Sequence record: MW749006.1
Direction: 5' to 3' (one strand)
Length of the DNA: 64,000 nucleotides
The notes under the pieces are model-generated. The model saw nothing but the letters and a program-made list of their open reading frames with translations. It was not told the origin of the DNA and made no database searches. Shown here in pieces: positions 12,516 through 60,814 of the stretch (its first letter is position 1; every line of letters starts with the position of its first letter). The position numbers and the translations under genes are program-made.

Positions 12516-12545
12516 AGTCAACTACCCCTACCCAAAGGAAGGGGT
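12516..12545 (+). repeat. 30-bp hairpin-forming direct repeat, copy A
   Basis: agtcaactacccctacccaaaggaaggggt; 29/30 identical to 14859-14888. Confidence 0.85.
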
Positions 12546-12564
12546 CTCTGTAGAGTAAATTCCG

Positions 12565-13077
12565 ATGAAAGATAAACACGTAATATTAACAGGTGGAGTT
12601 CGTAAAGGGGAGTTTACAGTAGTATCCGCTAGTACTCCGCGCAAGGTAGCTATAGTTGGTGGAGAACTTAGTATACCGTTAGGTGACTACACCGTTGAGA
12701 ACAAACCAATCTTTAACACAGCTTTCAGAACACACACTGTAAACACTCTACTCTATGACAGTATCTACTCCCTCTTGTTAAGTAGTAGAGATAAAGAAAT
12801 AGCAATAGAACTCACTCACCCTGATAGAGTAGTCGATTTAACTTTACATCCCAACGGAGATCTAACCCAAACAGATAGCGATGTGATGCGAGGTTATATT
12901 GAGGATAACCTTATATCAGTAACCAACCCTAAAACCAATAAGGTTACACTCACTGTTAAGGTCTCTAACCATAAACTAAATATCAGACGCTACGACAATA
13001 AACAAATTATTGGTAGTGTTAAATTAGGTTTGAATATCAGATCCGAACCTACAATCTTTATTAAATACAAGGTTTAA
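12565..13077 (+). CDS. Hypothetical protein
   Basis: 170-aa ORF. Confidence 0.65.
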   Translation: MKDKHVILTGGVRKGEFTVVSASTPRKVAIVGGELSIPLGDYTVENKPIFNTAFRTHTVNTLLYDSIYSLLLSSRDKEIAIELTHPDRVVDLTLHPNGDLTQTDSDVMRGYIEDNLISVTNPKTNKVTLTVKVSNHKLNIRRYDNKQIIGSVKLGLNIRSEPTIFIKYKV

Positions 13078-13600: not shown

Positions 13601-14878
13601 ATGTACAGTGAAGACATCTTAAATAAAGTCTCTGTTGAAGTATTGAAAAAGATTCAGGGAGAGTTTGGTATTGAGGTCAGACTATCCCGAGGTCACACTG
13701 GCGAGGTTTGGAGTGAAAACTTAAGTTACATAGTTGATCTTCTTAACGGATCAGTTAAGAAGTTACTTGTGTGTTTAAAGGACAACACTATAGCTGAAGT
13801 ATACGTTCTTGAAAGAGATGAACATCGCTTAGTCATTAGAATAGCACCTACTGATAAGAAACTAGATTCTAGTCGCTTGGTGTTTGAACTTAGCCATTTA
13901 GTTGAAAACAAAGAAAGTTCTTACAATAACGAGTTGTTGTGTAAGCTGTCAATTCGGATTATTAAAGACATCAAACAAACAGTAGAGACAGGAACTTTAA
14001 GTTACGAAAATATCAGCATTAACTCGGGTATAACTCGACTACCTTTCACTAAGGAAACAGTAGTTAATTTATTATCCCAGACTAGTCTTAAAGTGGTGGT
14101 AAATGTAATAAGTGATAGTCTAGTAAGAAGTTCTACTTGGTGTATAACTTTCACTAAGAAAGAAGATCATCTGTTAATGAAGTTACAACGAACTTTCAAT
14201 ACAAAAGTTCATGAATTTAGTTACGCACTAGCAAACTACGTTACTATTATAAACGAAACTTCTGAAACTAATGAACAATTCAACACTATGTTGAAATTAA
14301 TCAGACCGTATGAAACGGATCGCTTAACTTCAGTCAACATGCCCTCTAACCGATATCCTAAGGAAGAAAACGTGATTAAACAAGAACAAGGTTTGCCTTT
14401 TGACCTAGAACAGTTATGTAACAAGGTTAGTAACACATGCGGTTCTGTTCACTCGTTAAAGGAAACAATAAGCGCTATCACACAAAACCAAGAACTTACA
14501 GTTCAGCTAGAAAGACAAAAGACACGCTTTCTGCTAGAAGTAACCGGTGATATTGTTTCTAATTGGAACTCAGCTGTAGAGTTTCGATTCTCCCCTGACT
14601 TACCTGTAGAATCTCTGTTCTTACATTTCCCAGAAAGAAGTGTAGATCTGAACCGATACGTAGTTACTTTTCTAAACAACTGTAAACTAAAGTACATTCA
14701 TAAAACAGATGTTAAAGAAGAACATTACTTACTGAGTGTAGAGTTAGACGATAAAACTTACAACGTAGGTATTCCTGTTAACGCTGTTGATTTCATCACC
14801 ATTCTATCTGCCTTCGGTGGTCGAGTGGAGATCAGCACTCTGTTGGATCATTTTCGAAAGTCAACTACCCCTACCTAA
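13601..14878 (+). CDS. Hypothetical protein
   Basis: 425-aa ORF; last codons (KSTTPT*) are supplied by repeat copy B. Confidence 0.7.
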   Translation: MYSEDILNKVSVEVLKKIQGEFGIEVRLSRGHTGEVWSENLSYIVDLLNGSVKKLLVCLKDNTIAEVYVLERDEHRLVIRIAPTDKKLDSSRLVFELSHLVENKESSYNNELLCKLSIRIIKDIKQTVETGTLSYENISINSGITRLPFTKETVVNLLSQTSLKVVVNVISDSLVRSSTWCITFTKKEDHLLMKLQRTFNTKVHEFSYALANYVTIINETSETNEQFNTMLKLIRPYETDRLTSVNMPSNRYPKEENVIKQEQGLPFDLEQLCNKVSNTCGSVHSLKETISAITQNQELTVQLERQKTRFLLEVTGDIVSNWNSAVEFRFSPDLPVESLFLHFPERSVDLNRYVVTFLNNCKLKYIHKTDVKEEHYLLSVELDDKTYNVGIPVNAVDFITILSAFGGRVEISTLLDHFRKSTTPT

Positions 14879-14888
14879 AGGAAGGGGT
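14859..14888 (+). repeat. 30-bp hairpin-forming direct repeat, copy B
   Basis: agtcaactacccctacctaaaggaaggggt. Confidence 0.85.
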
Positions 14889-14907
14889 TTCCATGGAGTA
14901 AACAATT

Positions 14908-15249
14908 ATGAAAGATCTAGGTAAGATAAACTACAAGTACATCAAAGACCCAGAACCAACTAAACAAGAAGGTTTGTGTGTGGTTGTAGTGTTTCGAAAA
15001 GATATAAGCGTCTTGGAAGATTTACTTATACTAGGTATGTGTAACACTAATTTACCAAGTAACGTCCTTAAACTTAAACCTTGCAAGTTCAACTTAACTA
15101 CAGATGTTGAGAAGAACGAATTCATTCTAGATATAGACACTGAGATTCTTGTAGACTACAAGATCAAATGTCACTTGTTCTTAGTTGACGAAGTATATCT
15201 AGCGTTACCAGATGGTCGTAAGGTACATAACCTTTACACTAAACTTTAA
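14908..15249 (+). CDS. Hypothetical protein
   Basis: 113-aa ORF with GGAG RBS. Confidence 0.65.
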   Translation: MKDLGKINYKYIKDPEPTKQEGLCVVVVFRKDISVLEDLLILGMCNTNLPSNVLKLKPCKFNLTTDVEKNEFILDIDTEILVDYKIKCHLFLVDEVYLALPDGRKVHNLYTKL

Positions 15250-20684: not shown

Positions 20685-20745
20685 TACATATATAGTACTT
20701 AGATATCCACTCCTACTCATTGACTAAAGTTTGTGAGTAGGAGAC
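20685..20745 (+). promoter_or_regulatory. Promoter motif copy 4 + leader hairpin
   Basis: tacatatatagtac, then ctcctactca...tgagtaggag stem. Confidence 0.7.
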
Positions 20746-20800: not shown

Positions 20801-21040
20801 ATGCTTATTTTGAATCAAGAACTAGAACCAAACATACTCAAGGCTACTGTAGAACTACCTGAAGGTAAGGTAATACAGATACAAATACAAGACGCAAAAC
20901 TTTCAGCGGTGAACGGTTTTGGAATGGTCCACTATCTAACAGGTGACGAAGTTGTCCTAATTCTTAACACCCTAGGTTATCCGTATGGCAGTGTTAGTGG
21001 TTTAGTTACAGCGCCTAACGCTATCTGGGAGATTAATTGA
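20801..21040 (+). CDS. Hypothetical protein
   Basis: 79-aa ORF with AAGGA RBS. Confidence 0.6.
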   Translation: MLILNQELEPNILKATVELPEGKVIQIQIQDAKLSAVNGFGMVHYLTGDEVVLILNTLGYPYGSVSGLVTAPNAIWEIN

Positions 21041-21432
21041 TGAAAAGGTACATCACTTTAGCTTCGGTACTTTCAGTGGTGATGTCAACAACTTCTATTG
21101 CGTCTTCTAACGACGTGAGTGGAGTTACAAACGTAGTCTACCCAGATCACGACCCAAAGGTTATGGTAGAGATAGAAACACTTCGTAGCGTGTCTATACA
21201 AGTTCACGCTGGTGAAGATGATCTAGAACTACAGAACATATCTGTTAACAAAGGTAACTGTGTTATGTCTAGTATAGTTACTGTTAACGATAAAAGAAAA
21301 GTATTCCCTGTTAAACTAAATGTTAACGAAACTGCTAGTGTTCAGATGCTTAGTGATTGCGAAGTATTGTTTCTAGATGTAACTATTAACAGTAAGAAAC
21401 TATCCTACGAAATAAACACTGTAGAAATCTAA
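21037..21432 (+). CDS. Exported protein with signal peptide (paralog of the 21844-22344 C-terminal domain)
   Basis: MMKRYITLASVLSVVMSTTSIA signal; ISVNKGNC...FPVKLN...C motif. Confidence 0.6.
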   Translation: MMKRYITLASVLSVVMSTTSIASSNDVSGVTNVVYPDHDPKVMVEIETLRSVSIQVHAGEDDLELQNISVNKGNCVMSSIVTVNDKRKVFPVKLNVNETASVQMLSDCEVLFLDVTINSKKLSYEINTVEI

Positions 21433-21768: not shown

Positions 21769-21843
21769 AAGAAATCTAAACCTCAACCCACTACTCGACA
21801 CAAAGTTGAGTAGAGGGTAACTTAACCTAAAGAGTAAAAAACG

Positions 21844-22344
21844 ATGAAAAAGATCCTAGCTATGTTTGCAATTGTTATGTCATTTAACGTAATGGCTGAT
21901 AGTGATGTGGAGAAATGCGTCACTAAGAAAATTGAAAGTTTCCATAAAGTAATGGGTGAAGACGAACCTATCTCTATGGGTATGTTAGAGGAGTGGGAGT
22001 ACGAATGTGATCTAGGTGGATACACTGACTACGTTGATCCTAACGCAGAGCAAGTAGCTGATCCTGAGATTAAGTTGTACATTGAACCAGTTTATGTGGG
22101 GAACAGTCTTCGCCATATGGTAAAAGTACAAAGTATGGAAAACAACTTAATCGTTAAAGAGATGATTATTAATCGAGGTAATTGTACTGTAGGAGCAGAT
22201 GCTAAGAACGGTCACTACACTTATAAGTTACCTGTAACTCTTAACTACGGTGAAGGTATTAGTATTCCAGTAATAAGTGCCTGTGATATCATAGAGATTA
22301 CTTTGAAACTTAACGATGTAGAAGTGTCATATAACGTAAACTAA
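21844..22344 (+). CDS. Exported two-domain protein with signal peptide
   Basis: MKKILAMFAIVMSFNVMA signal; Cys-bounded helical N-domain; IINRGNC...LPVTLNYG...C C-domain. Confidence 0.65.
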   Translation: MKKILAMFAIVMSFNVMADSDVEKCVTKKIESFHKVMGEDEPISMGMLEEWEYECDLGGYTDYVDPNAEQVADPEIKLYIEPVYVGNSLRHMVKVQSMENNLIVKEMIINRGNCTVGADAKNGHYTYKLPVTLNYGEGISIPVISACDIIEITLKLNDVEVSYNVN

Positions 22345-22349
22345 AGTTA

Positions 22350-22388
22350 ACAACTAAGAACCACCACCCGGCTTTCGCTAGGTGGTGG
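22350..22388 (+). repeat. 39-bp direct repeat copy A (hairpin without U-tract)
   Basis: acaactaagaaccaccacccggctttcgctaggtggtgg, identical to 23021-23059. Confidence 0.92.
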
Positions 22389-22415
22389 GATACTTAATGT
22401 AGAGAGAACATAAAG

Positions 22416-23018
22416 ATGGAAGAAGTAAAGACAGAACATCAGTTGCGTGAGTTAATAAGAACTAATCCGGGAGCAGTAAACTGGGATAACGTTAGTTACC
22501 ATCAGACTCTATCAGAGGAATTCATCCGTGAGTTCCAGACTAAGTTAGATTGGTATGGCATTAGTTTTAACCAGAAACTATCGGAAGAGTTCATTCGTGA
22601 GTTCCAGGATAAGGTAAATTGGAGAGGCGTTAGTTACCGACAGTCCTTATCCGAGGAGTTCATTCGTGAGTTCCAAGATAAGGTAAACTGGGAACAAGTT
22701 AGTCAACAACAGACTTTATCGGAAGAGTTCATCCGTGAATTCCAAGATAAGTTAAATCTTGAGATTATCTTCACCGTTCAAGACTACAGTGAAGACTTTG
22801 AGCTAATGAAAGTATACACACAAAACAACCCTGACTTACTCAGGGTGACTAAGATAGCAATCAACAAAGAACTACTAGAGAAACTAGAAGCCTGTGAAGA
22901 TGGCGTTGTGTGCTTCCTAGAACACACTAAACCGGATGAATCTATCGACTGGTTCGAACTCAAGAGACGACATAAATGGAAGAGTGACTTGTCTTGGTTG
23001 TTTGAGAGATTAGTTTAG
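22416..23018 (+). CDS. 23-aa tandem repeat protein (W..[VI]S..Q.LSEEFIREFQDK[VL][ND])
   Basis: Four complete 69-nt repeats at 22482-22757 plus a degenerate fifth. Confidence 0.85.
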   Translation: MEEVKTEHQLRELIRTNPGAVNWDNVSYHQTLSEEFIREFQTKLDWYGISFNQKLSEEFIREFQDKVNWRGVSYRQSLSEEFIREFQDKVNWEQVSQQQTLSEEFIREFQDKLNLEIIFTVQDYSEDFELMKVYTQNNPDLLRVTKIAINKELLEKLEACEDGVVCFLEHTKPDESIDWFELKRRHKWKSDLSWLFERLV

Positions 23019-23020
23019 AG

Positions 23021-23070
23021 ACAACTAAGAACCACCACCCGGCTTTCGCTAGGTGGTGGTTTCTTTTTTC
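23021..23070 (+). terminator. 39-bp direct repeat copy B acting as terminator (U-tract present)
   Basis: Same hairpin as copy A followed by tttcttttttc; lies between convergent genes. Confidence 0.85.
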
Positions 23071-23076
23071 TTTCTT

Positions 23077-25668
23077 TTACGCAGTTACAGTTATGTATCC
23101 TGATAGGTTAATCTTCTCAGGTTTGTTATTAGTCAACACTCTAACTAAGTTAGCCACGAATCTATACTGATGTAAGTTTAGATTGACGTGTGTGTTACCT
23201 AAGTGTGGGTGTATCTCCACTAAGTTATCTGGAAGGTTAGCTCTGATAGGGTCTAACTTATGTAGTAGTTTATAGTCTTCTTGATTCAACAAATCAAAGA
23301 ACACCGTGTCGTCATACGGATTGATATAAGTGGATGCAGGTATAACACCCATTAACATTTCATGTATTACTCTAGACACTACTGGAGAGTATAGATAGTG
23401 GTGATCTGAGATGATGTTAAACTCATCTATATTAGGTTCAGGATAGATCAAGTTAAATAACCCAGCTATCCTTTCGTTAAGATCACTACTTTCCTTATAG
23501 AAATCTGTAGTGTTTAAACCAGTCATGTCATATAAAGGAATCATAGTCTCTGACATAGAGTAAGGTAAACCATTCAGAGCGTCATCTAAACGAACAGTGT
23601 TATCCTCTTCAGCAAACCTTAAGTTATCTCTACTGTAGATCTTACCACCAACAAAGATACTAAAGACTCTATCGTCTCTTATGTCGTAAAGGTTATTTCT
23701 GCCTAACACACCGTTGTTAACGAAGCCATTGATTTCATGTTGATTAAGTTCATCAATGCTACTAACAACTCCTCTAGCTCGTATGTGTACTTTTTGATTC
23801 TCTTTAGTGTAGTCTATATAAGTCTTATTGACTATGTTAATATTAGGTAACTCTAAGAAGTAGTCTAGGTTATAGTTAAGACGATATCCGTTTAAGTAAA
23901 CTTCTAATGTCTCAGGTACATAGTCAAGAGGATGGCGTTTCAAACCTAATCCTCTATCCTCTACATAACTAATAGGAAAGAACATGGTACCTTGTGTTAA
24001 CGGAACATCTACATCCCACAACACCGGGTTATCCTGGTAAACTACTTTAACCTTTTCTATATCAGATAGATTAAGAGTAGCTAGTTGTCCGTTTATAACT
24101 ACTTTGCTAGCATCGTTAGTTATATCTACCCAAGGAGACTGTCTAGTGAAGTCCTGGAAGCTAGCCATCAATAAACGATACTCAAAGTTACGTAGATTAA
24201 TCACTTCACCTTTAACATACAACGCACCGTGACTCGCAACTTCAGTACCACGTATAAACTCTAAATGTCGGATGTTATTGCTACTAGGAATGTAAGCGGG
24301 ACCTTGTGTAGTAAAACGACCAGTCATTCGTCTATTCTTATCGTACTCATAGACAGTAGAATCGTTTCTATAGATTCTTGGAACTTGAACATAGTTATCA
24401 GTACTACTTATTCGTATAGGAGACTTACCATATTCAAAAGAAATACCGTTGTAACCTATAGCTGATCTAGATAACTCTTCAGTTACTTTTGACATAGATT
24501 TAAGTGATGCTAATTCAAAGTAGTCACTTGCTTCTAATGTCTCAGCACGAAACTCAGTGATAGTATAGTTAGTATTAGTTAAAACATCCAACTGTACTGT
24601 CTTAGGTAATTTATATAGTTCATGTAACTTTAAGGAAGTGTATTTCAACTCTCTACTTAAACCACTCTTACGAGTATATATAGTTATGTATTTATCACCA
24701 GAGACTCCACCTATTTTATTAGATAAAGTAGTTGCTTGATTATTAACATACTGAGTGTATAAACTATAGTCTTTATCAGTTACGTTTCTAACAACAAAGT
24801 CTTTATGTTGATAGAAGTATATACCTGTTGTGTGACCTGTTGGAATCGAGGTGATGTAGATTTCATTATCATCTTCATACTGAATTCTGTTTATAACAGG
24901 ATCTCTATATAGTAAGTATTTTAACTTGGTATCCTTACTAGAAGAGAAAGTACGTAATCCGTTAATGGGGTATCTTTCTTTAGAGATGATAGATTGATCA
25001 TACAGAACTTCAACTCTAGATGGTGTTGGTAAATGTAACGTGACGTTATCGGTATAATAACCGTTTACGTATACCATTACATCACCACCACTTTGCTTAT
25101 ACTCTGCTATCTTAGTTTGTACAGTTACTTTATTAGCGTTGTTATTTACTATATAAGAACTTAACTGAATGCCTTTACGAACAGGTTGTGTTAAATACTC
25201 GTTAGTTGTGAAATAACGATTACTGTAAACTCTGAGGAACTTGAAACTCTCCACGTCAAAGTTTCTTGACATCTCTAAATCTATTTTAGTTGCAAAGATG
25301 ATACTGTTCTCATCTATGAACATATAGTAGATGTTAGCTCTGGGAAACATAACTCCTTCTTGGTTATATAGTTGTAAGATATAGTCTCTGTCAACCATAT
25401 CTTTACTTACTTGAACCCAAGAGTCTTTGTACCAGTCTCTGTTCTGTCTTAAGAGGTTTATAACCGTAGGGTTAAGGTTTCCTATAAGGTATACATGAAA
25501 CGTGTTAGTGGAGTCTGGGAGGTGTTTAGAAGCACCAGAATAAATAGCTACATTACGTTTAGCTGGTCGCTTAGGTTTAGTAACTCTAATTAGATTAAAA
25601 GTATACTGTCTATCTTGATGTGGTGCACAGTAGATGTTTTCTAAGGCAAATCTTTGTATTTCACGCAC
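23077..25668 (-). CDS. Large virion structural protein (phiKZ gp27-like)
   Basis: 863 aa; begins with FALENIYCAP.QDRQY; syntenic, divergent from tail sheath. Confidence 0.65.
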   Translation of the reverse strand: MREIQRFALENIYCAPHQDRQYTFNLIRVTKPKRPAKRNVAIYSGASKHLPDSTNTFHVYLIGNLNPTVINLLRQNRDWYKDSWVQVSKDMVDRDYILQLYNQEGVMFPRANIYYMFIDENSIIFATKIDLEMSRNFDVESFKFLRVYSNRYFTTNEYLTQPVRKGIQLSSYIVNNNANKVTVQTKIAEYKQSGGDVMVYVNGYYTDNVTLHLPTPSRVEVLYDQSIISKERYPINGLRTFSSSKDTKLKYLLYRDPVINRIQYEDDNEIYITSIPTGHTTGIYFYQHKDFVVRNVTDKDYSLYTQYVNNQATTLSNKIGGVSGDKYITIYTRKSGLSRELKYTSLKLHELYKLPKTVQLDVLTNTNYTITEFRAETLEASDYFELASLKSMSKVTEELSRSAIGYNGISFEYGKSPIRISSTDNYVQVPRIYRNDSTVYEYDKNRRMTGRFTTQGPAYIPSSNNIRHLEFIRGTEVASHGALYVKGEVINLRNFEYRLLMASFQDFTRQSPWVDITNDASKVVINGQLATLNLSDIEKVKVVYQDNPVLWDVDVPLTQGTMFFPISYVEDRGLGLKRHPLDYVPETLEVYLNGYRLNYNLDYFLELPNINIVNKTYIDYTKENQKVHIRARGVVSSIDELNQHEINGFVNNGVLGRNNLYDIRDDRVFSIFVGGKIYSRDNLRFAEEDNTVRLDDALNGLPYSMSETMIPLYDMTGLNTTDFYKESSDLNERIAGLFNLIYPEPNIDEFNIISDHHYLYSPVVSRVIHEMLMGVIPASTYINPYDDTVFFDLLNQEDYKLLHKLDPIRANLPDNLVEIHPHLGNTHVNLNLHQYRFVANLVRVLTNNKPEKINLSGYITVTA

Positions 25669-28806: not shown

Positions 28807-28844
28807 TCTTTCTAACCAGATAAAAAACTTGAGAGGAATAAACA

Positions 28845-36726: not shown

Positions 36727-36737
36727 TTTAGATGTGA

Positions 36738-36797
36738 CTGAAATTCTTACAGTTACATATATATTACCTAGAGAGATACAGTGTAATTCTATACTGT
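36738..36797 (+). promoter_or_regulatory. 60-bp promoter (copy 7) + leader hairpin module, paired with 49095-49154
   Basis: 54/60 identical to 49095-49154; contains tacatatatattac and tacagtgta-attc-tatactgt. Confidence 0.8.
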
Positions 36798-36819
36798 ATA
36801 ATTATTGTTGGAGGTCTCT

Positions 36820-37104
36820 ATGTGTAATTTATCAGCTTTAGTTAATGGAGATCTCACTGATCGCCAGATACTATCAGTTAAGAAACTAGATGAAGTTCGT
36901 AAAGAAGGACTACCTTTAGTAGAACGCATTCCGTACATAATGGAATGTATGTTCGAAATGGAACTCTCTTTTGAGTACGTTGAAAGTTTTATTGTTAAGT
37001 TGATTAACAGAGCCAAAGAAAGACACTTAAAAGAAGTGTCTTCTAATTTAACAAACCTAGACACTGAGTTGATGGAGTTATCTCCACGGGTGTTTCTAGG
37101 TTAA
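36820..37104 (+). CDS. Hypothetical protein in a monocistronic cassette
   Basis: GGAGG RBS then ATG 36820. Confidence 0.65.
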   Translation: MCNLSALVNGDLTDRQILSVKKLDEVRKEGLPLVERIPYIMECMFEMELSFEYVESFIVKLINRAKERHLKEVSSNLTNLDTELMELSPRVFLG

Positions 37105-37147
37105 GAAGGAACACATAACCGACGTTTAATAAAGTATAGTTTAAAGA

Positions 37148-37187
37148 AACCACTACCCGGCTAACGCTAGGTAGTGGTTTCTTTTTT
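37148..37187 (+). terminator. Intrinsic terminator; exact reverse complement of the 49461 hairpin
   Basis: aaccactacccggctaacgctaggtagtggtt followed by tcttttttc. Confidence 0.85.
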
Positions 37188-37193
37188 CTTTCT

Positions 37194-39626
37194 TTACAAC
37201 TCAATTACTTCTACATCTCTAAAGTTAGCTAGAGTCTGGTCTACATGTGTGATCAAGAAGATCTGACTGTAGAAACTACCTGACATCAAACTAAAGATTA
37301 AGTTAAACAACTTAGCTCTATGGTTAGTGTCTAGTGTTAAACCAAACTCATCTAAGAACAAACAACTCCCTTCTAACCCTAACAACCTGTACATCACTAA
37401 CTTAAAACTAAGATTGATGATCTCCTTCATACCGTTAGATACTAAGTTGATATCGTCTATAGTCATCTTGTCTTCTACCTCTACCTTAAACTTATAGTTC
37501 AAAGCTTCACTCTCTATATCTAGAGGACGCAGTATCATCTTGTAATCCCAGATACCACGGATAGTGTTATTGATGTTGTTAATTATGTTGTTAAGGAAAC
37601 TACTCACTGACTTAGCAATAATACCGTTCTTAGGTGATAGTTCATCTAGAGTGATGTTAAGTACTTTAGAGTTCTCTTGGTAGTCTTCTATTAATTTCTT
37701 AGCTTGTTCTACGGAGTAAGAGATAGTCTTGTGGTGTGCTAACTCATTCTCAGTCTCTACTATGATTACCTTTGACTTTGTTAAGTCAGTGTCTATAGTC
37801 GCTATGATCGCGTCTACAACGTTTGAGAGGTTACTGGTAGTGACATTAGTCCTAGACGTTTCTATCTCAGTGTGGAGCTTATCAAGGTACGTGTGGAGAG
37901 TGTTAGCTCTTTGTATGTGAGAAAGATTAGCTAGTAAGTCTTTCTTCTTAGCTTGTAGCTCAAACGCTAAGCTACTTAGTGTATTAACTTCTTCTTCTAT
38001 ATTAGAGAGAGATGTATTACGTAATGTATTTAGAGTTTCTAGACCTTCGTGTATCTCTGATAGTCTAGTGTCTATTTCTGTTAATCTTCTAAGGTACTTA
38101 ACATCTAAAGCAGCTTGTGCTATGACTGTCATTATCTTAGGTGGATCTTCGTAGACGTAACCTAATGAATTTACTCTATTCCAAACTTCTTGAAGAGATT
38201 CTCTAGTAACAGAAACAAGACGACTAAACTGTCTGTGTTGGTTGAAGTACTCTTGTTGTTGCTCTTGAATAGCTTCTATCTCTTTAACTTTAGTCTGTGC
38301 TTTATGTTTGTCCCCTAGAACTGTCTGTAGCTTTGTTCTAGCATCTTTTAAGAGAGTAGGGATATCCTTGGGTGACCAAGTGTATTCACAGCTAGGACAG
38401 GTCGTGGTGTCGTTAGAGGAGGTGTAGTCTTCTATAGCTTTCTCTAAACGAATCTCTTCTTGAATAGCTTTGTTAAGAAGTTCGTTGTAGTGTCTTAGGT
38501 TGTTATCAGCCGCGTAAGCTGAATCTCTAGAATACTTAAGTATGTTGTCTACCGTTGGGTTAGGTTGCATCTCACTTAGTATCTCAGGTAGAGATGTTTC
38601 TAACTGATATATCTCATTAGAGTAGAGAGTTACCTTTGACTTGTCTTTAAGTAGGGTAAGAGAAGACTCTAGATTAGATTGCTCCATAGCTAGATGTGCT
38701 TCTTCTTGTAGTAGAGAATCTACGTCTACTGAAGCTAACAAGGATAAAGCTTTACGTTCCTTATCTTTTTCCTCTAGTGTAGTGTAGAGTTGATTGAGTT
38801 GAAAGTCTACTACGGATAGTTCTGAGTTATACTTAGTAGTGTACTTAGGTATATCACCACGAGGGAAAGATGTTCTTAGAAGATAGTACCTTTTGTTAAG
38901 GTCTTTTAACTTCATAGTTAAGTCTTTGTGTGTGTGGTAGAGATCTAACTGAGATCCATCTGACTTATGTTTGTAAAGGGTTGTTCTCATCTCTAGAAGT
39001 AAGTCACTGTAATCTTTAGTTCTTTGTAGTGTAGCGTTAAGAGTTTCAAGACGAGTAGTGTCTGAAAGTTTAGCTTCTTCACGTTGTAGTATAGACGCTT
39101 GAGACTTTAATAGTAACTCATTGTTCTTTAGCTCTTCTCGCAGCTTCTCGTACGCTTCTAAGACACTATCTATGTTAAGGTGAGTGATAGTATTGAATAA
39201 CTTCTTACGTGCAAGGAGCGACATACTAGTGAAGTTCTCTTTACCAACAAAGATGTCATGTACTACTTGAGAGATATTAAAGTGTTTAAGAACTAATGCT
39301 CTTTGTGTAGATACAATAGCTGCAGTGTTTAATTCTTCTCCATTCATAACGAATCTAAACTTAGCTGACTTCTCTGTGAAGTCTGAGATAAGAATATACT
39401 TGTCATGGTCTTTCTCTATATGTATCTCTTTGTATCCACCTTGATTGAAGTCGTTCTTATCTGAAGGTAGTGGAGTAAGTTCATTGAAGAGAGAAGACTT
39501 ACCAGATCCATTAGGACCTGAGATCATGGTTAATTTGTTTGTTGGGTTGAAGGTATGTTCAAAGGTGTTATCGTCTCTGAGTGGCATACGTTTAAAGTTA
39601 ACTAGTTGTATGTAAGTGATGAACAT
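37194..39626 (-). CDS. sbcC: SbcC/Rad50-like SMC ATPase (phiKZ gp165-like)
   Basis: ISGPNGSGKSS Walker A, coiled coil, CPSC zinc hook, VSNGMKE signature, FLDEFG Walker B, ITH. Confidence 0.9.
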   Translation of the reverse strand: MFITYIQLVNFKRMPLRDDNTFEHTFNPTNKLTMISGPNGSGKSSLFNELTPLPSDKNDFNQGGYKEIHIEKDHDKYILISDFTEKSAKFRFVMNGEELNTAAIVSTQRALVLKHFNISQVVHDIFVGKENFTSMSLLARKKLFNTITHLNIDSVLEAYEKLREELKNNELLLKSQASILQREEAKLSDTTRLETLNATLQRTKDYSDLLLEMRTTLYKHKSDGSQLDLYHTHKDLTMKLKDLNKRYYLLRTSFPRGDIPKYTTKYNSELSVVDFQLNQLYTTLEEKDKERKALSLLASVDVDSLLQEEAHLAMEQSNLESSLTLLKDKSKVTLYSNEIYQLETSLPEILSEMQPNPTVDNILKYSRDSAYAADNNLRHYNELLNKAIQEEIRLEKAIEDYTSSNDTTTCPSCEYTWSPKDIPTLLKDARTKLQTVLGDKHKAQTKVKEIEAIQEQQQEYFNQHRQFSRLVSVTRESLQEVWNRVNSLGYVYEDPPKIMTVIAQAALDVKYLRRLTEIDTRLSEIHEGLETLNTLRNTSLSNIEEEVNTLSSLAFELQAKKKDLLANLSHIQRANTLHTYLDKLHTEIETSRTNVTTSNLSNVVDAIIATIDTDLTKSKVIIVETENELAHHKTISYSVEQAKKLIEDYQENSKVLNITLDELSPKNGIIAKSVSSFLNNIINNINNTIRGIWDYKMILRPLDIESEALNYKFKVEVEDKMTIDDINLVSNGMKEIINLSFKLVMYRLLGLEGSCLFLDEFGLTLDTNHRAKLFNLIFSLMSGSFYSQIFLITHVDQTLANFRDVEVIEL

Positions 39627-40260: not shown

Positions 40261-40608
40261 ATGTCAGTACGCATTAATTTTGATCTAGCAGTAGAAGGTA
40301 AGACTGAGTGGTCTTACAATAAGGTATTACCGACAGAGAATAGTCTTGTTATACAGAGTTATGCTGAGCGGGTTATCAAGGATATAGTGGATGGTATTCG
40401 TGTAAGAGTATTTCGTTTGAACGAATTAGGTTGGGATTCTTCTTACACTACGGAGTATGAGAGTTCTTTACGTAACTTGTTAAGTGGAGTGTTTAGAGTT
40501 AGTTGTATAGCCCAGGATACTATTCACAAACAATATCCTTGTAAAGACAGCATTATGTTAGCTACAATTATTACTCCTTGTGTTACTGGTGTAAAGAGTT
40601 TAGTATAA
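40261..40608 (+). CDS. Hypothetical protein
   Basis: 115-aa ORF. Confidence 0.6.
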   Translation: MSVRINFDLAVEGKTEWSYNKVLPTENSLVIQSYAERVIKDIVDGIRVRVFRLNELGWDSSYTTEYESSLRNLLSGVFRVSCIAQDTIHKQYPCKDSIMLATIITPCVTGVKSLV

Positions 40609-41598: not shown

Positions 41599-42242
41599 TC
41601 ATGTCAGATAAGTGGTTGATTAAGAATCTACATAAACTAATGACTGGAGGTAGCAGAGGCGCTGTACGGTACGTTGACCGTGAGACAGGTATTCCTTTAG
41701 CTAACAACTTTCAAATGGGTAGAGAGCTTCCTGGGGACGCTAGACGAGTTGTTTCGTATGGTGTTAGTAGTTATGGTTACGATGTTCGTTTAGATAACAA
41801 TGTTAATCACATCCGTATCTTTAGTAACGTCAAGGTTACAGAGATTAATCCTAAGAAGATGAGTGAAGATAACTTCTATCAACCGACTGTTTTAGTAGAT
41901 GAAGATGGTGGTGAGTACGTGTTGATTCCACCTCACTCCTATCTACAAGCTCCTACGGTTGAGTACTTTGATATACCTAGAGATATCATGGTGGTTGTGT
42001 TGGGTAAGAGCACATATGCTCGTAGTGGGGTTGTGTGTAACGTTACTCCTATTGAACCAGGATTTCAAGGTAACGTAGTTATTGAGTTAGCTAACGTTAC
42101 TAGCTCTCATGTTCGTTGTTACTTGAATGAAGGAGTAGCTCAGTTTCTATTCTTCCAAGGGAATGAACCTTGTGGTTTAAGCTACGCTGACAAAGGTGGT
42201 AAGTATCAAGGTCAGACGGGTATGACTATGGCTAAGGTATAG
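41595..42242 (+). CDS. dcd: dCTP deaminase
   Basis: SYGVSSYGYDVRL, GKSTYARSG, VTPIEPGFQG, EGVAQFLF, GKYQGQ. Confidence 0.93.
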   Translation: MIMSDKWLIKNLHKLMTGGSRGAVRYVDRETGIPLANNFQMGRELPGDARRVVSYGVSSYGYDVRLDNNVNHIRIFSNVKVTEINPKKMSEDNFYQPTVLVDEDGGEYVLIPPHSYLQAPTVEYFDIPRDIMVVVLGKSTYARSGVVCNVTPIEPGFQGNVVIELANVTSSHVRCYLNEGVAQFLFFQGNEPCGLSYADKGGKYQGQTGMTMAKV

Positions 42243-49002: not shown

Positions 49003-49094
49003 ATCTACAACCCTCCACAGCGCCCTTCTAGAGAAATCTAGAGGGCGTTGTTAGGGTTATGTTTATAAGTATCTAGAAACGACTCACAGTGTAT

Positions 49095-49154
49095 CTGAAA
49101 TCTTTATGGTTACATATATAATACCTAGAGAGATACGGTGTAATTCTATACTGT
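49095..49154 (+). promoter_or_regulatory. 60-bp promoter (copy 10) + leader hairpin module, paired with 36738-36797
   Basis: ctgaaatctttatggttacatatataatacctagagagatacggtgtaattctatactgt. Confidence 0.8.
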
Positions 49155-49218
49155 GTCATTATTACTGAAGCTATTCCTTACATATAGGATAGCAATCACT
49201 GTCCTGGAGGACAACACT

Positions 49219-49455
49219 ATGTTTAATTTACAAGACATCCTTGACACTATAACAAACATCAATCCAACAACAAAAGTCTTTGATCGACCATTCGAAGACA
49301 TTATCAAAGAAGTTAGACACACTACCGAAGACGTAGTTGTTAGTTCAGCTTCTAATCAAACCGATCCAAAGGCTTCTACATATTTTAAAGTAGGAAGTAA
49401 AGAGTATGTTGCTCGCTATCGTGGAGCATACACTCAGATCTCTTTAGTGGCATAA
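49219..49455 (+). CDS. Hypothetical protein in a monocistronic cassette
   Basis: GGAGGA RBS then ATG 49219. Confidence 0.65.
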   Translation: MFNLQDILDTITNINPTTKVFDRPFEDIIKEVRHTTEDVVVSSASNQTDPKASTYFKVGSKEYVARYRGAYTQISLVA

Positions 49456-49460
49456 AGATT

Positions 49461-49505
49461 AACCACTACCTAGCGTTAGCCGGGTAGTGGTTTCTTTTTT
49501 TTTTT
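49461..49505 (+). terminator. Intrinsic terminator; inverted copy of the 37148 hairpin
   Basis: aaccactacctagcgttagccgggtagtggtt followed by a T-tract. Confidence 0.85.
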
Positions 49506-49510
49506 CTTTC

Positions 49511-54333: not shown

Positions 54334-54889
54334 AAAGTTTATCAGTATCAGCAGTGTTTAACATGTGATGTATACTAGTTAAAGTGGAATAGTGTTCCTT
54401 GTAGAACTCATCCAATGCTTCTACTATTGGTTTAAGAGAACGAACGTGTTTAGGACTAGTAATACAAATAGGATAGGTCTTCTTAGACAGTAACTCATAA
54501 ATGTAAACTATACCAAACAAAGACTCAGGATCAATAGTATCACTCGTGTTGAAAACATACTTCTCTAACTGTTGTTTGTATTTCTCTTTGAACTTACCAC
54601 CTGTCATAGTTAACCTGGATGGTTCAAACACAGTACCACAGATAGCGTAATGTAACTTACCTTTACCTTTAACTGTAGTAAAGAAAGGTTTCTGTTTATC
54701 TGGTCGATCTGAGAAAGATACATTGTCATTAAAGATACTAGCGATATCAGCTTGTAACGAATCTACCACTTCTTGACCTGCCTCATTAAACTCTTCTGGA
54801 TCTATAGTGTATGATCCTGGTTCATCTATAAGTTGTTCTGGTTCTTTAACTAATGAATCGTTTTTAGTGTATAGGTTTTTAGTAGACAT
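54320..54889 (-). CDS. Hypothetical protein
   Basis: 189-aa ORF overlapping the RNase H start. Confidence 0.65.
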   Translation of the reverse strand: MSTKNLYTKNDSLVKEPEQLIDEPGSYTIDPEEFNEAGQEVVDSLQADIASIFNDNVSFSDRPDKQKPFFTTVKGKGKLHYAICGTVFEPSRLTMTGGKFKEKYKQQLEKYVFNTSDTIDPESLFGIVYIYELLSKKTYPICITSPKHVRSLKPIVEALDEFYKEHYSTLTSIHHMLNTADTDKLFEGK

Positions 54890-54965
54890 ATTAATATTCC
54901 TAGTTGGGTAGATTTCATTGCATTAAGATCAATATAAAAAAGACATCACCGGAGAGATATATAAC

Positions 54966-55464: not shown

Positions 55465-55872
55465 ATGTTAGGTAAATCTCTAACAATCCAATTGAAACAT
55501 CTCTCCATAAACTCCCTAGATAAGGGTAAGTTTACGTTAAACATATTACACACTATCGTATGTGAAGCTATTAGCGTCACTGTAGATTCACGCACTGTTA
55601 GTAATATGAATGTCTCATGTAACTTCGAACGTAACCTAGGTCAAGTAGATCTATACCCTCAACTAGATTGGCTTTACGAAGCATCTGAGGGCGAGTTACT
55701 AACACTCAAACATTCGTTCCAAAACTTTGTAATTAGTACTATGGAACACTTTAATTATTCTAAACTTAAGAGTACACACACTCTAAGTTTTACCACCGCC
55801 GTTCTTGGTAATAACCTAGCCGTGATAAGTTACGGTATTATTGGAGATAGTTTTAATGTTGAATCATGTTAG
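55465..55872 (+). CDS. Hypothetical protein
   Basis: 135-aa ORF. Confidence 0.6.
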   Translation: MLGKSLTIQLKHLSINSLDKGKFTLNILHTIVCEAISVTVDSRTVSNMNVSCNFERNLGQVDLYPQLDWLYEASEGELLTLKHSFQNFVISTMEHFNYSKLKSTHTLSFTTAVLGNNLAVISYGIIGDSFNVESC

Positions 55873-60143: not shown

Positions 60144-60533
60144 ATGTCTAGCTACGACGAAGAAGGTATACGGTTATTAGATAAGACAGTAGCCGTCAGA
60201 GAAAGAATGATTGACCACTTATTAAAGTCGGAAGAGCTACCCACTAAAGCACGAGATGTAGAGAAATTTGTTACTCTACTAGACTCTACAGATAAGAGTA
60301 TCTTTACTCGCGCTAAGATTAAGTTAGAAGAAAGTAACCAGAAGACTAGTGAAGAATCTAAAGAGTTACTACGTGATCTTTTACTTAGTTTACATCAAAC
60401 ACCTAAAGAAAAAGACATTACTCCAACTACTGGAGTTATACCTCAATTTGTTTCTTCCTCTATGGTTGTTACTGATGCTGAAATTATGTTAGAAGAAGAT
60501 GAACCAGACATCGAACAGTACTTAAGTAATTAA
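60144..60533 (+). CDS. Hypothetical protein
   Basis: 129 aa; GGAGG RBS. Confidence 0.65.
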   Translation: MSSYDEEGIRLLDKTVAVRERMIDHLLKSEELPTKARDVEKFVTLLDSTDKSIFTRAKIKLEESNQKTSEESKELLRDLLLSLHQTPKEKDITPTTGVIPQFVSSSMVVTDAEIMLEEDEPDIEQYLSN

Positions 60534-60577: not shown

Positions 60578-60814
60578 TTATATCTTTAACTTACTATTAA
60601 GTAAAGCGATAGAACCGCTGTACTGAGGTCGTACTTCCCTTGAGGCTATGTAAATAGCTTTCTCTGGAGTTAGAGTAGTAGAGTTTATTTCTTCTGACAT
60701 CAATTTGTAGAACTCTATAGGGTCTATCTTAGTAGGTACGTTTACTTCCGTAGAAGTTATTCGAGTCTTCTTAAGAACGTTTATGGGCAAGGACGCTAAG
60801 TAATCTTTAAGCAC
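60578..60814 (-). CDS. Small hypothetical protein
   Basis: 78-aa ORF with AGGAG RBS. Confidence 0.55.
   Translation of the reverse strand: MLKDYLASLPINVLKKTRITSTEVNVPTKIDPIEFYKLMSEEINSTTLTPEKAIYIASREVRPQYSGSIALLNSKLKI

Follow-up and report, generated by a model that had tools for sequence, protein, structure and literature searches.

The window analysed here is a stretch of 64,000 nucleotides that corresponds, at 100% identity, to the last 64 kb of the genome of Bacillus phage vB_BspM_AgentSmith (MW749006.1, 200,233 bp); subtracting 136,233 from a record position gives the window position, and window positions are used below unless the record is named. The annotation of AgentSmith includes several split RNA polymerase (RNAP) beta subunits and a tubulin-like protein, and its virion proteins are of the phiKZ type (DUF7193, phiKZ sheath and tube families), which together identify it as a phiKZ-like jumbo phage of a Gram-positive host. 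Given the split beta-subunit genes and the phiKZ-type relatives, AgentSmith is presumably transcribed by its own multisubunit RNAPs.

The locus of interest comprises three genes. Gene 157 (21844-22344, plus strand) encodes a 166-aa protein with a signal-peptide-like N-terminus, and its orthologues in relatives show 89% and 74% identity. It is followed by gene 158 (AGENTSMITH_158; 22416-23018, plus strand), which encodes 200 aa, and by the convergent gene 159 (23077-25668, minus strand), a phiKZ-type virion protein gene (DUF7193). An exact 39-nt direct repeat, present at 22350-22388 and 23021-23059 with a spacing of 671 bp, encloses gene 158, such that nothing lies between the two copies other than a 27-nt leader with the ribosome-binding region (22389-22415, plus strand) and this single plus-strand reading frame. 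The pair is the longest exact non-coding direct repeat of the whole 200,233-bp genome; zero matches of this kind are expected in shuffled sequence, and the window holds no third copy at up to three mismatches. Within each copy, an 11-nt flank precedes a 28-nt hairpin (22361-22388; 23032-23059), in which an 8-bp stem continues past a mismatch for another 3 bp and is capped by a tetraloop; the fold energy is -21.8 kcal/mol (z -3.3) for the upstream copy and -27.2 kcal/mol (z -6.2) for the downstream one.

The two copies differ in what follows them. A T-tract (23060-23078) comes after the downstream copy and runs into the stop codon of gene 159, whereas the upstream copy has no plus-strand T-tract and is directly followed by the leader and the ATG of gene 158. 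Thus, on the plus strand, the downstream copy combines the features of an intrinsic terminator, i.e., a G+C-rich hairpin, an immediate U-tract and a position at the 3' end of the unit, and the upstream copy does not. Read on the minus strand, the 11-nt flank provides a U-rich tail, with 5 T in the first 8 nt past the stem in both copies, and for this reason each copy has the appearance of a complete terminator on that strand. The site formed by the downstream copy and its T-tract (23021-23078), conserved in L006, L007, L008 and L017-L020 among the relatives introduced below, therefore looks bidirectional, a predicted intrinsic-terminator-like site between the convergent genes 158 and 159. The earlier note on this DNA had described perfect 39-bp repeats around exactly one gene with a U-tract on the second copy only, and this description is accurate, the latter part for the plus strand.

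Upstream of the locus, a promoter-like motif (20686-20698) and a 5' stem-loop (20710-20743), both on the plus strand, likely mark the start of a transcription unit that comprises genes 154-158. This motif (ACATATATA, one variable base, TA) occurs 17 times in the genome, always on the plus strand and with a stem-loop within a few bases; ten copies fall in the window (at 2859, 3774, 11464, 20686, 31846, 36755, 39703, 42263, 49112 and 54967) and seven more elsewhere in the record, and CTGAA is often found about 13 nt upstream of it. Between 20743 and gene 158 there is no further promoter-like motif, and neither the phage motif nor a sigma-70-like site is present in either 39-bp copy or in the leader; the whole interval 22345-22415 is free of promoter motifs. 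Gene 158 would therefore have to be transcribed by read-through of the T-less upstream copy, as the earlier note had proposed. Within the same unit, the spacer between genes 156 and 157 holds another hairpin, hpB (21787-21817, plus strand; -20.3 kcal/mol, z -4.1), which also lacks a T-tract, is followed by a conserved leader and has a core motif restricted to this locus and its relatives. A short distance upstream lies a single copy of an 11-nt direct repeat (21769-21779, plus strand), discussed below. Pfam and PHROGs assign no known function to genes 154-158. Gene 155 (21037-21432) is likely a paralogue of gene 157, judging from an N-terminal hydrophobic stretch and a Gly-Asn-Cys motif recognized by eye, and a tblastn search with gene 157 returned a second match within the AgentSmith record.

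The hairpin of the 39-bp repeat belongs to a family with seven dispersed copies in AgentSmith, including the gene 158 pair. Five of the seven carry a T-tract, and four of these five are located at convergent gene junctions, such as those between genes 178 and 179 (37150-37195, plus strand) and between genes 197 and 198 (49463-49508, plus strand). Across the family, 97.7% of the stem positions are paired, and compensatory changes at two pairs support the predicted structure. Collectively, these features agree with the earlier view of the hairpin as a terminator-type element. The fifth stem pair is C-G in both gene 158 copies and U-A in the other T-tract copies, from which it follows that the gene 158 copies are each other's closest relatives. 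Experimental mapping in the giant phages 201phi2-1 and phiKZ has revealed conserved terminator motifs, some of them bidirectional (PMC11512511), so that a terminator family as such is to be expected in AgentSmith. Those motifs resemble the AgentSmith hairpins in being dispersed over a giant-phage genome, in sharing a common motif and in being bidirectional in some cases, but they were described as regulatory elements, and neither gene-boxing pairs nor a role in gene exchange was reported for them. One AgentSmith copy departs from the others in its orientation: the hairpin at 49463-49490 is the exact reverse complement of that at 37150-37177, while the flanks and the side of the T-tract are unchanged, as though recombination between the two arms of this hairpin had inverted its centre.

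These regulatory features give rise to one reading of the pair, of low but appreciable probability, in which the upstream hairpin is a regulatory duplicate that is kept by selection, its identity to the downstream copy being due to constraint or gene conversion and not to gene mobility. It could act as a 5' stem-loop that stabilizes the gene 158 mRNA after processing, as a partial attenuator that reduces expression of the last gene or as a second, backstop terminator against minus-strand read-through from gene 159. The U-rich tail common to both copies on the minus strand is in line with the last of these roles, and the presence of a 5' stem-loop after 17 of 17 promoter motifs suggests that AgentSmith uses such structures systematically. 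In Bacillus, 5' stem-loops protect mRNAs against 5'-to-3' decay, which also counts in favor of a regulatory duplicate. Such a role can coexist with the exchange of gene modules at the same hairpins, which is the reading developed below.

The enclosed gene encodes a protein in which an N-terminal solenoid of four to five 23-aa tryptophan-containing repeats is followed by about 85 C-terminal residues. It matches phrog_3532 (E = 5.9e-39), has more than 2,100 homologues and contains the same 23-aa repeat as the 'tryptophan repeat gene family' of Firmicutes jumbo phages, a name taken from the BpSp record. In an AF2 model, residues 10-120 form a helical repeat solenoid with a pLDDT above 90, and the C-terminus is poorly defined. 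Pfam, PHROGs and sequence and fold searches of the PDB gave no function for gene 158, and no relative was found in the PDB by either kind of search. The record label 'putative oligoendopeptidase F' finds no support, since Pfam detects no peptidase M3 domain and the PDB searches gave no match. According to tblastn, paralogues of the family are abundant in LPJP1, G, BpSp and c-st, with dozens in LPJP1, G and BpSp, whereas AgentSmith has one copy, placed at the end of an operon and outside any tandem array; a remnant of a tandem array of paralogues was ruled out on the basis of this single copy. The 69-nt coding repeat (22476-22751) varies in copy number between close relatives, with proteins of 167, 200 and 269 aa, and two contigs of relatives end inside arrays of at least six gene 158 repeats.

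Relatives were collected from Logan and ENA contigs by protein look-ups with genes 159, 158 and 157 as queries and by clusters, which was the source of all useful relatives. Within the annotated phage collection, no phage exceeded about 29% protein identity to AgentSmith for a core virion protein. Exact scans of IMG/VR, JGI metagenome contigs and GTDB genomes with the hairpin family and the conserved 3' end of gene 159 gave no match, a peptide-pattern search of IMG/VR found no relatives of gene 159, and a search of the literature on AgentSmith or the tryptophan-repeat family returned nothing relevant. The resulting comparison set consists of ten partial metagenomic contigs of AgentSmith-like phages (named where needed: L006-L008, L011, L012 and L017-L020), whose gene 159 products are 73-92% identical to that of AgentSmith. 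The position between genes 157 and 159, for which these two genes provide the conserved left and right borders, holds a tryptophan-repeat gene in 8 of the 10 relatives, the scar of such a gene in one (L007) and a different gene in another (L012).

Two of the relatives, L017 and L018, share the AgentSmith arrangement. Their exact repeat is 36 nt long, and gene 158 carries three extra 23-aa repeats, such that the spacing increases to 878 bp, i.e., 671 + 3 x 69. As the hairpin pair recurs in at least two other genomes, it is inherited, and its inheritance in at least three genomes makes the arrangement stable rather than visibly mobile. The finding of the same pair in independent assemblies from other samples, together with the zero matches in shuffled sequence, also rules out a chance similarity or an assembly artefact, the probability of which is negligible. 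A target-site duplication of the transposon type was likewise rejected, since the 39 bp duplicate a pre-existing regulatory element and there is no transposase. In three further relatives (L006, L019 and L020), the 3' end of gene 158, the hairpin and the T-tract adjoin gene 159.

Another arrangement is found in L008, where gene 158 has two fewer repeats, gene 157 is absent and a gene of 69 aa followed by the T-less hpB lies upstream. L007 is organized like L008, but its gene 158 is reduced to the leader, the ATG and the last approximately 40 nt. The junction of this loss maps to an imperfect microhomology of about 15 nt inside the gene (the left copy corresponds to 22408-22423 and the right copy to 22970-22983 of AgentSmith, plus strand), and not to the flanking hairpins. 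The leader of gene 158 is conserved in L008, L011, L017 and L018 as well as in the L007 scar. Because the hairpin in front of gene 158 is hpB in both L007 and L008, the gene is not invariably accompanied by the identical pair. The presence of an unrelated hairpin at the same place also argues against a regulatory duplicate of defined sequence, as it implies that no particular sequence is required there.

In L011 the gene order is the 69-aa gene, hpB, gene 157, a hairpin and gene 158, and the spacer between genes 157 and 158 equals that of AgentSmith except for one flank base and the 13-nt hairpin centre. This centre is of the hpB type, and the hairpin is thus chimeric. An exchange of a 13-nt patch between near-identical flanks could also mean that the hairpin, not the gene, is the mobile or converting unit, i.e., that a palindromic element spreads, or overwrites other intergenic stem-loops by short-patch gene conversion, and so turned an older spacer hairpin into one of the terminator type. 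The family copy whose centre is exactly inverted between unchanged flanks and the existence of seven dispersed copies fit this explanation, which we nevertheless consider improbable: 11 nt of the repeat lie beyond the palindrome, there is no sign of target-site duplications, and a mobile hairpin accounts neither for the replaced gene of L012 nor for the mosaic junction that separates L017 from L018 (see below).

In L012 genes 157 (74% identity) and 159 are kept, and an unrelated gene of 165 aa lies between them. This gene is flanked by a pair of hairpins that are related to each other but different from those of AgentSmith; the upstream one is degenerate with a broken T-run, and the downstream one is strong and carries a T-tract. 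In a sliding comparison of AgentSmith and L012, identity collapses just past the stop codon of gene 157 and returns, at 90-95%, at the T-tract. A regulatory duplicate of the gene 158 terminator leaves unexplained both why the L012 gene has a matched hairpin pair of its own and why homology between relatives breaks exactly at hairpins. For gene 157, the 69-aa gene and the gene found in L012, searches of Pfam, PHROGs and the PDB, by sequence and by fold, revealed no function.

The alternative gene of L012 also bears on the analogy with integrons drawn in the earlier note. In an integron-like capture, a dedicated recombinase would recognize the folded hairpin and insert or excise gene circles of 671 bp. 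As in integrons, the unit is a promoterless single gene that would be read from an upstream promoter, its ends are imperfect palindromes, and one site can hold alternative cargos. However, neither an integrase nor any other site-specific recombinase is found among the 215 annotated features of the record (evidence at the level of annotation), and the attI site and the conserved attC architecture of integrons are missing as well. The hairpins that accompany the different cargos are unrelated to one another (terminator type, hpB and L012 type), and the junctions vary between the hairpin centre, the 3' arm and plain direct repeats, which fits general homologous or microhomology-mediated recombination. 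An empty site, i.e., gene 157, hairpin, T-tract and gene 159 in direct succession, which the earlier note had proposed to look for, was found in none of the ten relatives. A dedicated integron-like capture system is thus very improbable, and the likeness to integrons is weak. Two other proposals of the earlier note fared better in part: alternative cargo does occur in the slot and is boxed by hairpins, albeit hairpins that differ from the AgentSmith pair, and recombination at a terminator hairpin is backed by junctions that map to hairpins, whereas the sole observed loss, that of L007, went through microhomology inside the gene.

Further breakpoints emerge from sliding comparisons among the closest relatives. 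Between L017 and L018, identity is 100% over the stretch that begins at gene 156 and reaches into gene 158, and about 72% from the terminator onward. AgentSmith and L017 are approximately 100% identical over about 290 nt of gene 158, whereas the flanking genes show 80-95% identity, which suggests that this segment was exchanged recently. Additionally, the hairpins are identical in AgentSmith, L017 and L018, whereas the adjacent leader and genes have diverged by 4-16%, and this implies that the hairpins are under selection or undergo gene conversion with each other. Accordingly, selection on a functional RNA or DNA element, and not a recent duplication, could be the reason why the copies are identical within and between genomes, an observation that favors a regulatory duplicate as well.

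A true empty site exists for the neighboring 69-aa gene. This gene is present in four relatives (e.g., L011:1254-1463 and L007:5156-5365) and is exactly absent from AgentSmith, L017 and L018. In L007 and L011 it has the 11-nt direct repeat on both sides; in the three genomes without the gene, a single copy of the repeat remains, located at 21769-21779 in AgentSmith. Moreover, more distant relatives, at about 53% identity, have wholly different small genes between DnaB and gene 159, and the region is therefore hyperplastic.

Taken together, these results are best explained, at a moderate level of probability, by homology-guided exchange of modules at terminator hairpins, similar to the shuffling mediated by promoter-early stem-loops (PeSLs) in T4-type phages. 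Exchange at stem-loops is supported by the chimeric hairpin of L011, the matched pair around the unrelated gene of L012, the edges of the slot, the switch in identity between L017 and L018 and the arrangement of gene 62 (see below). In such a scenario, the downstream copy and its T-tract would be a working bidirectional terminator that closes the unit of genes 154-158 against the convergent gene 159. A unit composed of hairpin, leader, gene and hairpin would be joined to an operon with a similar hairpin at its end, with a crossover by homologous recombination inside the hairpin or at its 3' edge. Consequently, the T-tract side of the resident hairpin would be replaced by the leader of the tryptophan-repeat gene, and the T-tract would move behind the new last gene, yielding the order hairpin, leader, gene, hairpin and T-tract. 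The added gene would borrow the upstream promoter by read-through and end at a proper terminator. On this account, the position between gene 157 and the T-tract is a recombination slot in a hyperplastic region, where short conserved stem-loops, and even shorter direct repeats, provide the homology for the gain, loss or replacement of single small genes. The exchange would probably take place in mixed infections with the phage's own recombination proteins, and either a circle or linear exchange between co-infecting genomes could serve as the route; genes annotated as UvsX-like, SbcCD and Holliday-junction resolvase are present in AgentSmith. At present, the upstream copy may well act as an RNA stabilizer, an attenuator or an antisense backstop terminator, which is compatible with an origin by recombination.

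Gene 158 is not the only gene boxed by hairpins in AgentSmith. Gene 62 (80 aa) has a T-less family hairpin and a ribosome-binding site upstream (record 60350-60381; L003:10350-10381) and a family hairpin with a T-tract downstream (record 60639-60666; L003:10639-10666), the latter at the convergent junction with gene 63. In a permutation test on 71 G+C-rich hairpins, four single genes (37, 58, 62 and 158) were found between similar neighboring hairpins versus 1.07 expected (P = 0.024), a modest enrichment. The stem-loop pairs of gene 37 (record 40526-40556 and 41997-42026) and gene 58 (record 54864-54893 and 55478-55509) lie outside the window and have almost no other relatives in the genome; in the gene 58 pair, the likeness extends about 15 nt beyond the hairpin, and the differences between the stems are compensatory. 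The small genes 178 and 197 (36733-37195 and 49090-49508), which are unrelated, have in common an 81-nt promoter-plus-stem-loop segment upstream (84% identical) and a family terminator downstream. A bolder and distinctly improbable proposal is that the hairpins of this lineage are dedicated gene-capture sites, at which a structure-specific phage enzyme takes up or releases single-gene circles, making up an integrase-free functional analogue of the integron system. The annotated Holliday-junction resolvase or one of the nucleases, for instance, would then act on the hairpin extruded at operon ends. If true, this would account for the finding of four genes between matched hairpins in a single genome.

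The closest known counterpart of module exchange at the gene 158 slot is found in T4-type phages, where PeSL cassettes and PeSL-mediated modular shuffling have been described (Arbiol et al. 2010, PMC2839356; Comeau et al. 2014, PMC4122927) and mini-circles were detected by PCR (PMC2839356). In both systems, short conserved regulatory stem-loops flank single small genes without known function in hyperplastic regions, and close relatives differ by insertions, deletions or replacements with breakpoints at the motifs, here in L012, L011 and L017/L018. Transcription stays correct after PeSL exchange, as is predicted for AgentSmith, and the circle suggested in the earlier note corresponds to the published 'mini-circle' model. 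The two systems also differ in several respects. In a PeSL, a strong early promoter is combined with a stem-loop to form a single motif, whereas the AgentSmith repeat is a terminator hairpin without a promoter, and the boxed gene would rely on read-through. PeSL phages are T4-type phages that use host sigma-70, in contrast to the phiKZ-like AgentSmith with its presumed RNAPs. The AgentSmith motifs are not homologous to PeSLs, and the mini-circles detected by PCR are those of T4-type phages. Separate composites of promoter and stem-loop, similar in kind to PeSLs, do exist elsewhere in the AgentSmith genome, in the 17 copies mentioned above.

Other known forms of gene addition are more distant. 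Morons of lambdoid and other temperate phages are single extra genes inserted between conserved genes, with a promoter and a terminator of their own. Like a moron, gene 158 is an extra gene between two conserved genes and ends in a terminator, but it has no promoter, the terminator is duplicated, and AgentSmith is a lytic jumbo phage. Jumbo phages contain hundreds of small genes without known function, and to our knowledge the route by which these are acquired is poorly documented. The present locus may offer a worked example from a phiKZ-like Bacillus phage, in which single genes appear to be added, swapped and lost at regulatory stem-loops while transcription would remain undisturbed. A concept that has so far been demonstrated for T4-type phages would thereby reach another phage lineage, unrelated to the first, and the example would imply that a bare terminator without a promoter is able to serve as an exchange site. 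The hairpin-flanked gene slot represents a known type of phage genome plasticity in a variant form that is new. In practical terms, the operon-end slot between hairpin and T-tract could provide a natural, tolerated insertion site for phage engineering.

Two further observations concern other parts of the genome. A 58-nt repeat (83% identical) at 12516-12573 and 14859-14916 includes a short stem-loop rich in G+C and extends up to an ATG. The repeat probably represents a 5' leader common to both sites, and a similar stretch follows the promoter motif at record position 71755. Lastly, L006, L017 and L019 have an extra gene between those for the tail sheath and the tail tube (L006:2985-4505; L017:7602-8963; L019:1-711), which encodes 453-506 aa with DUF723 and a zinc-ribbon-like domain. 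AgentSmith has only a 38-nt spacer at this position (28807-28844), and the extra gene looks like a mobile insertion.
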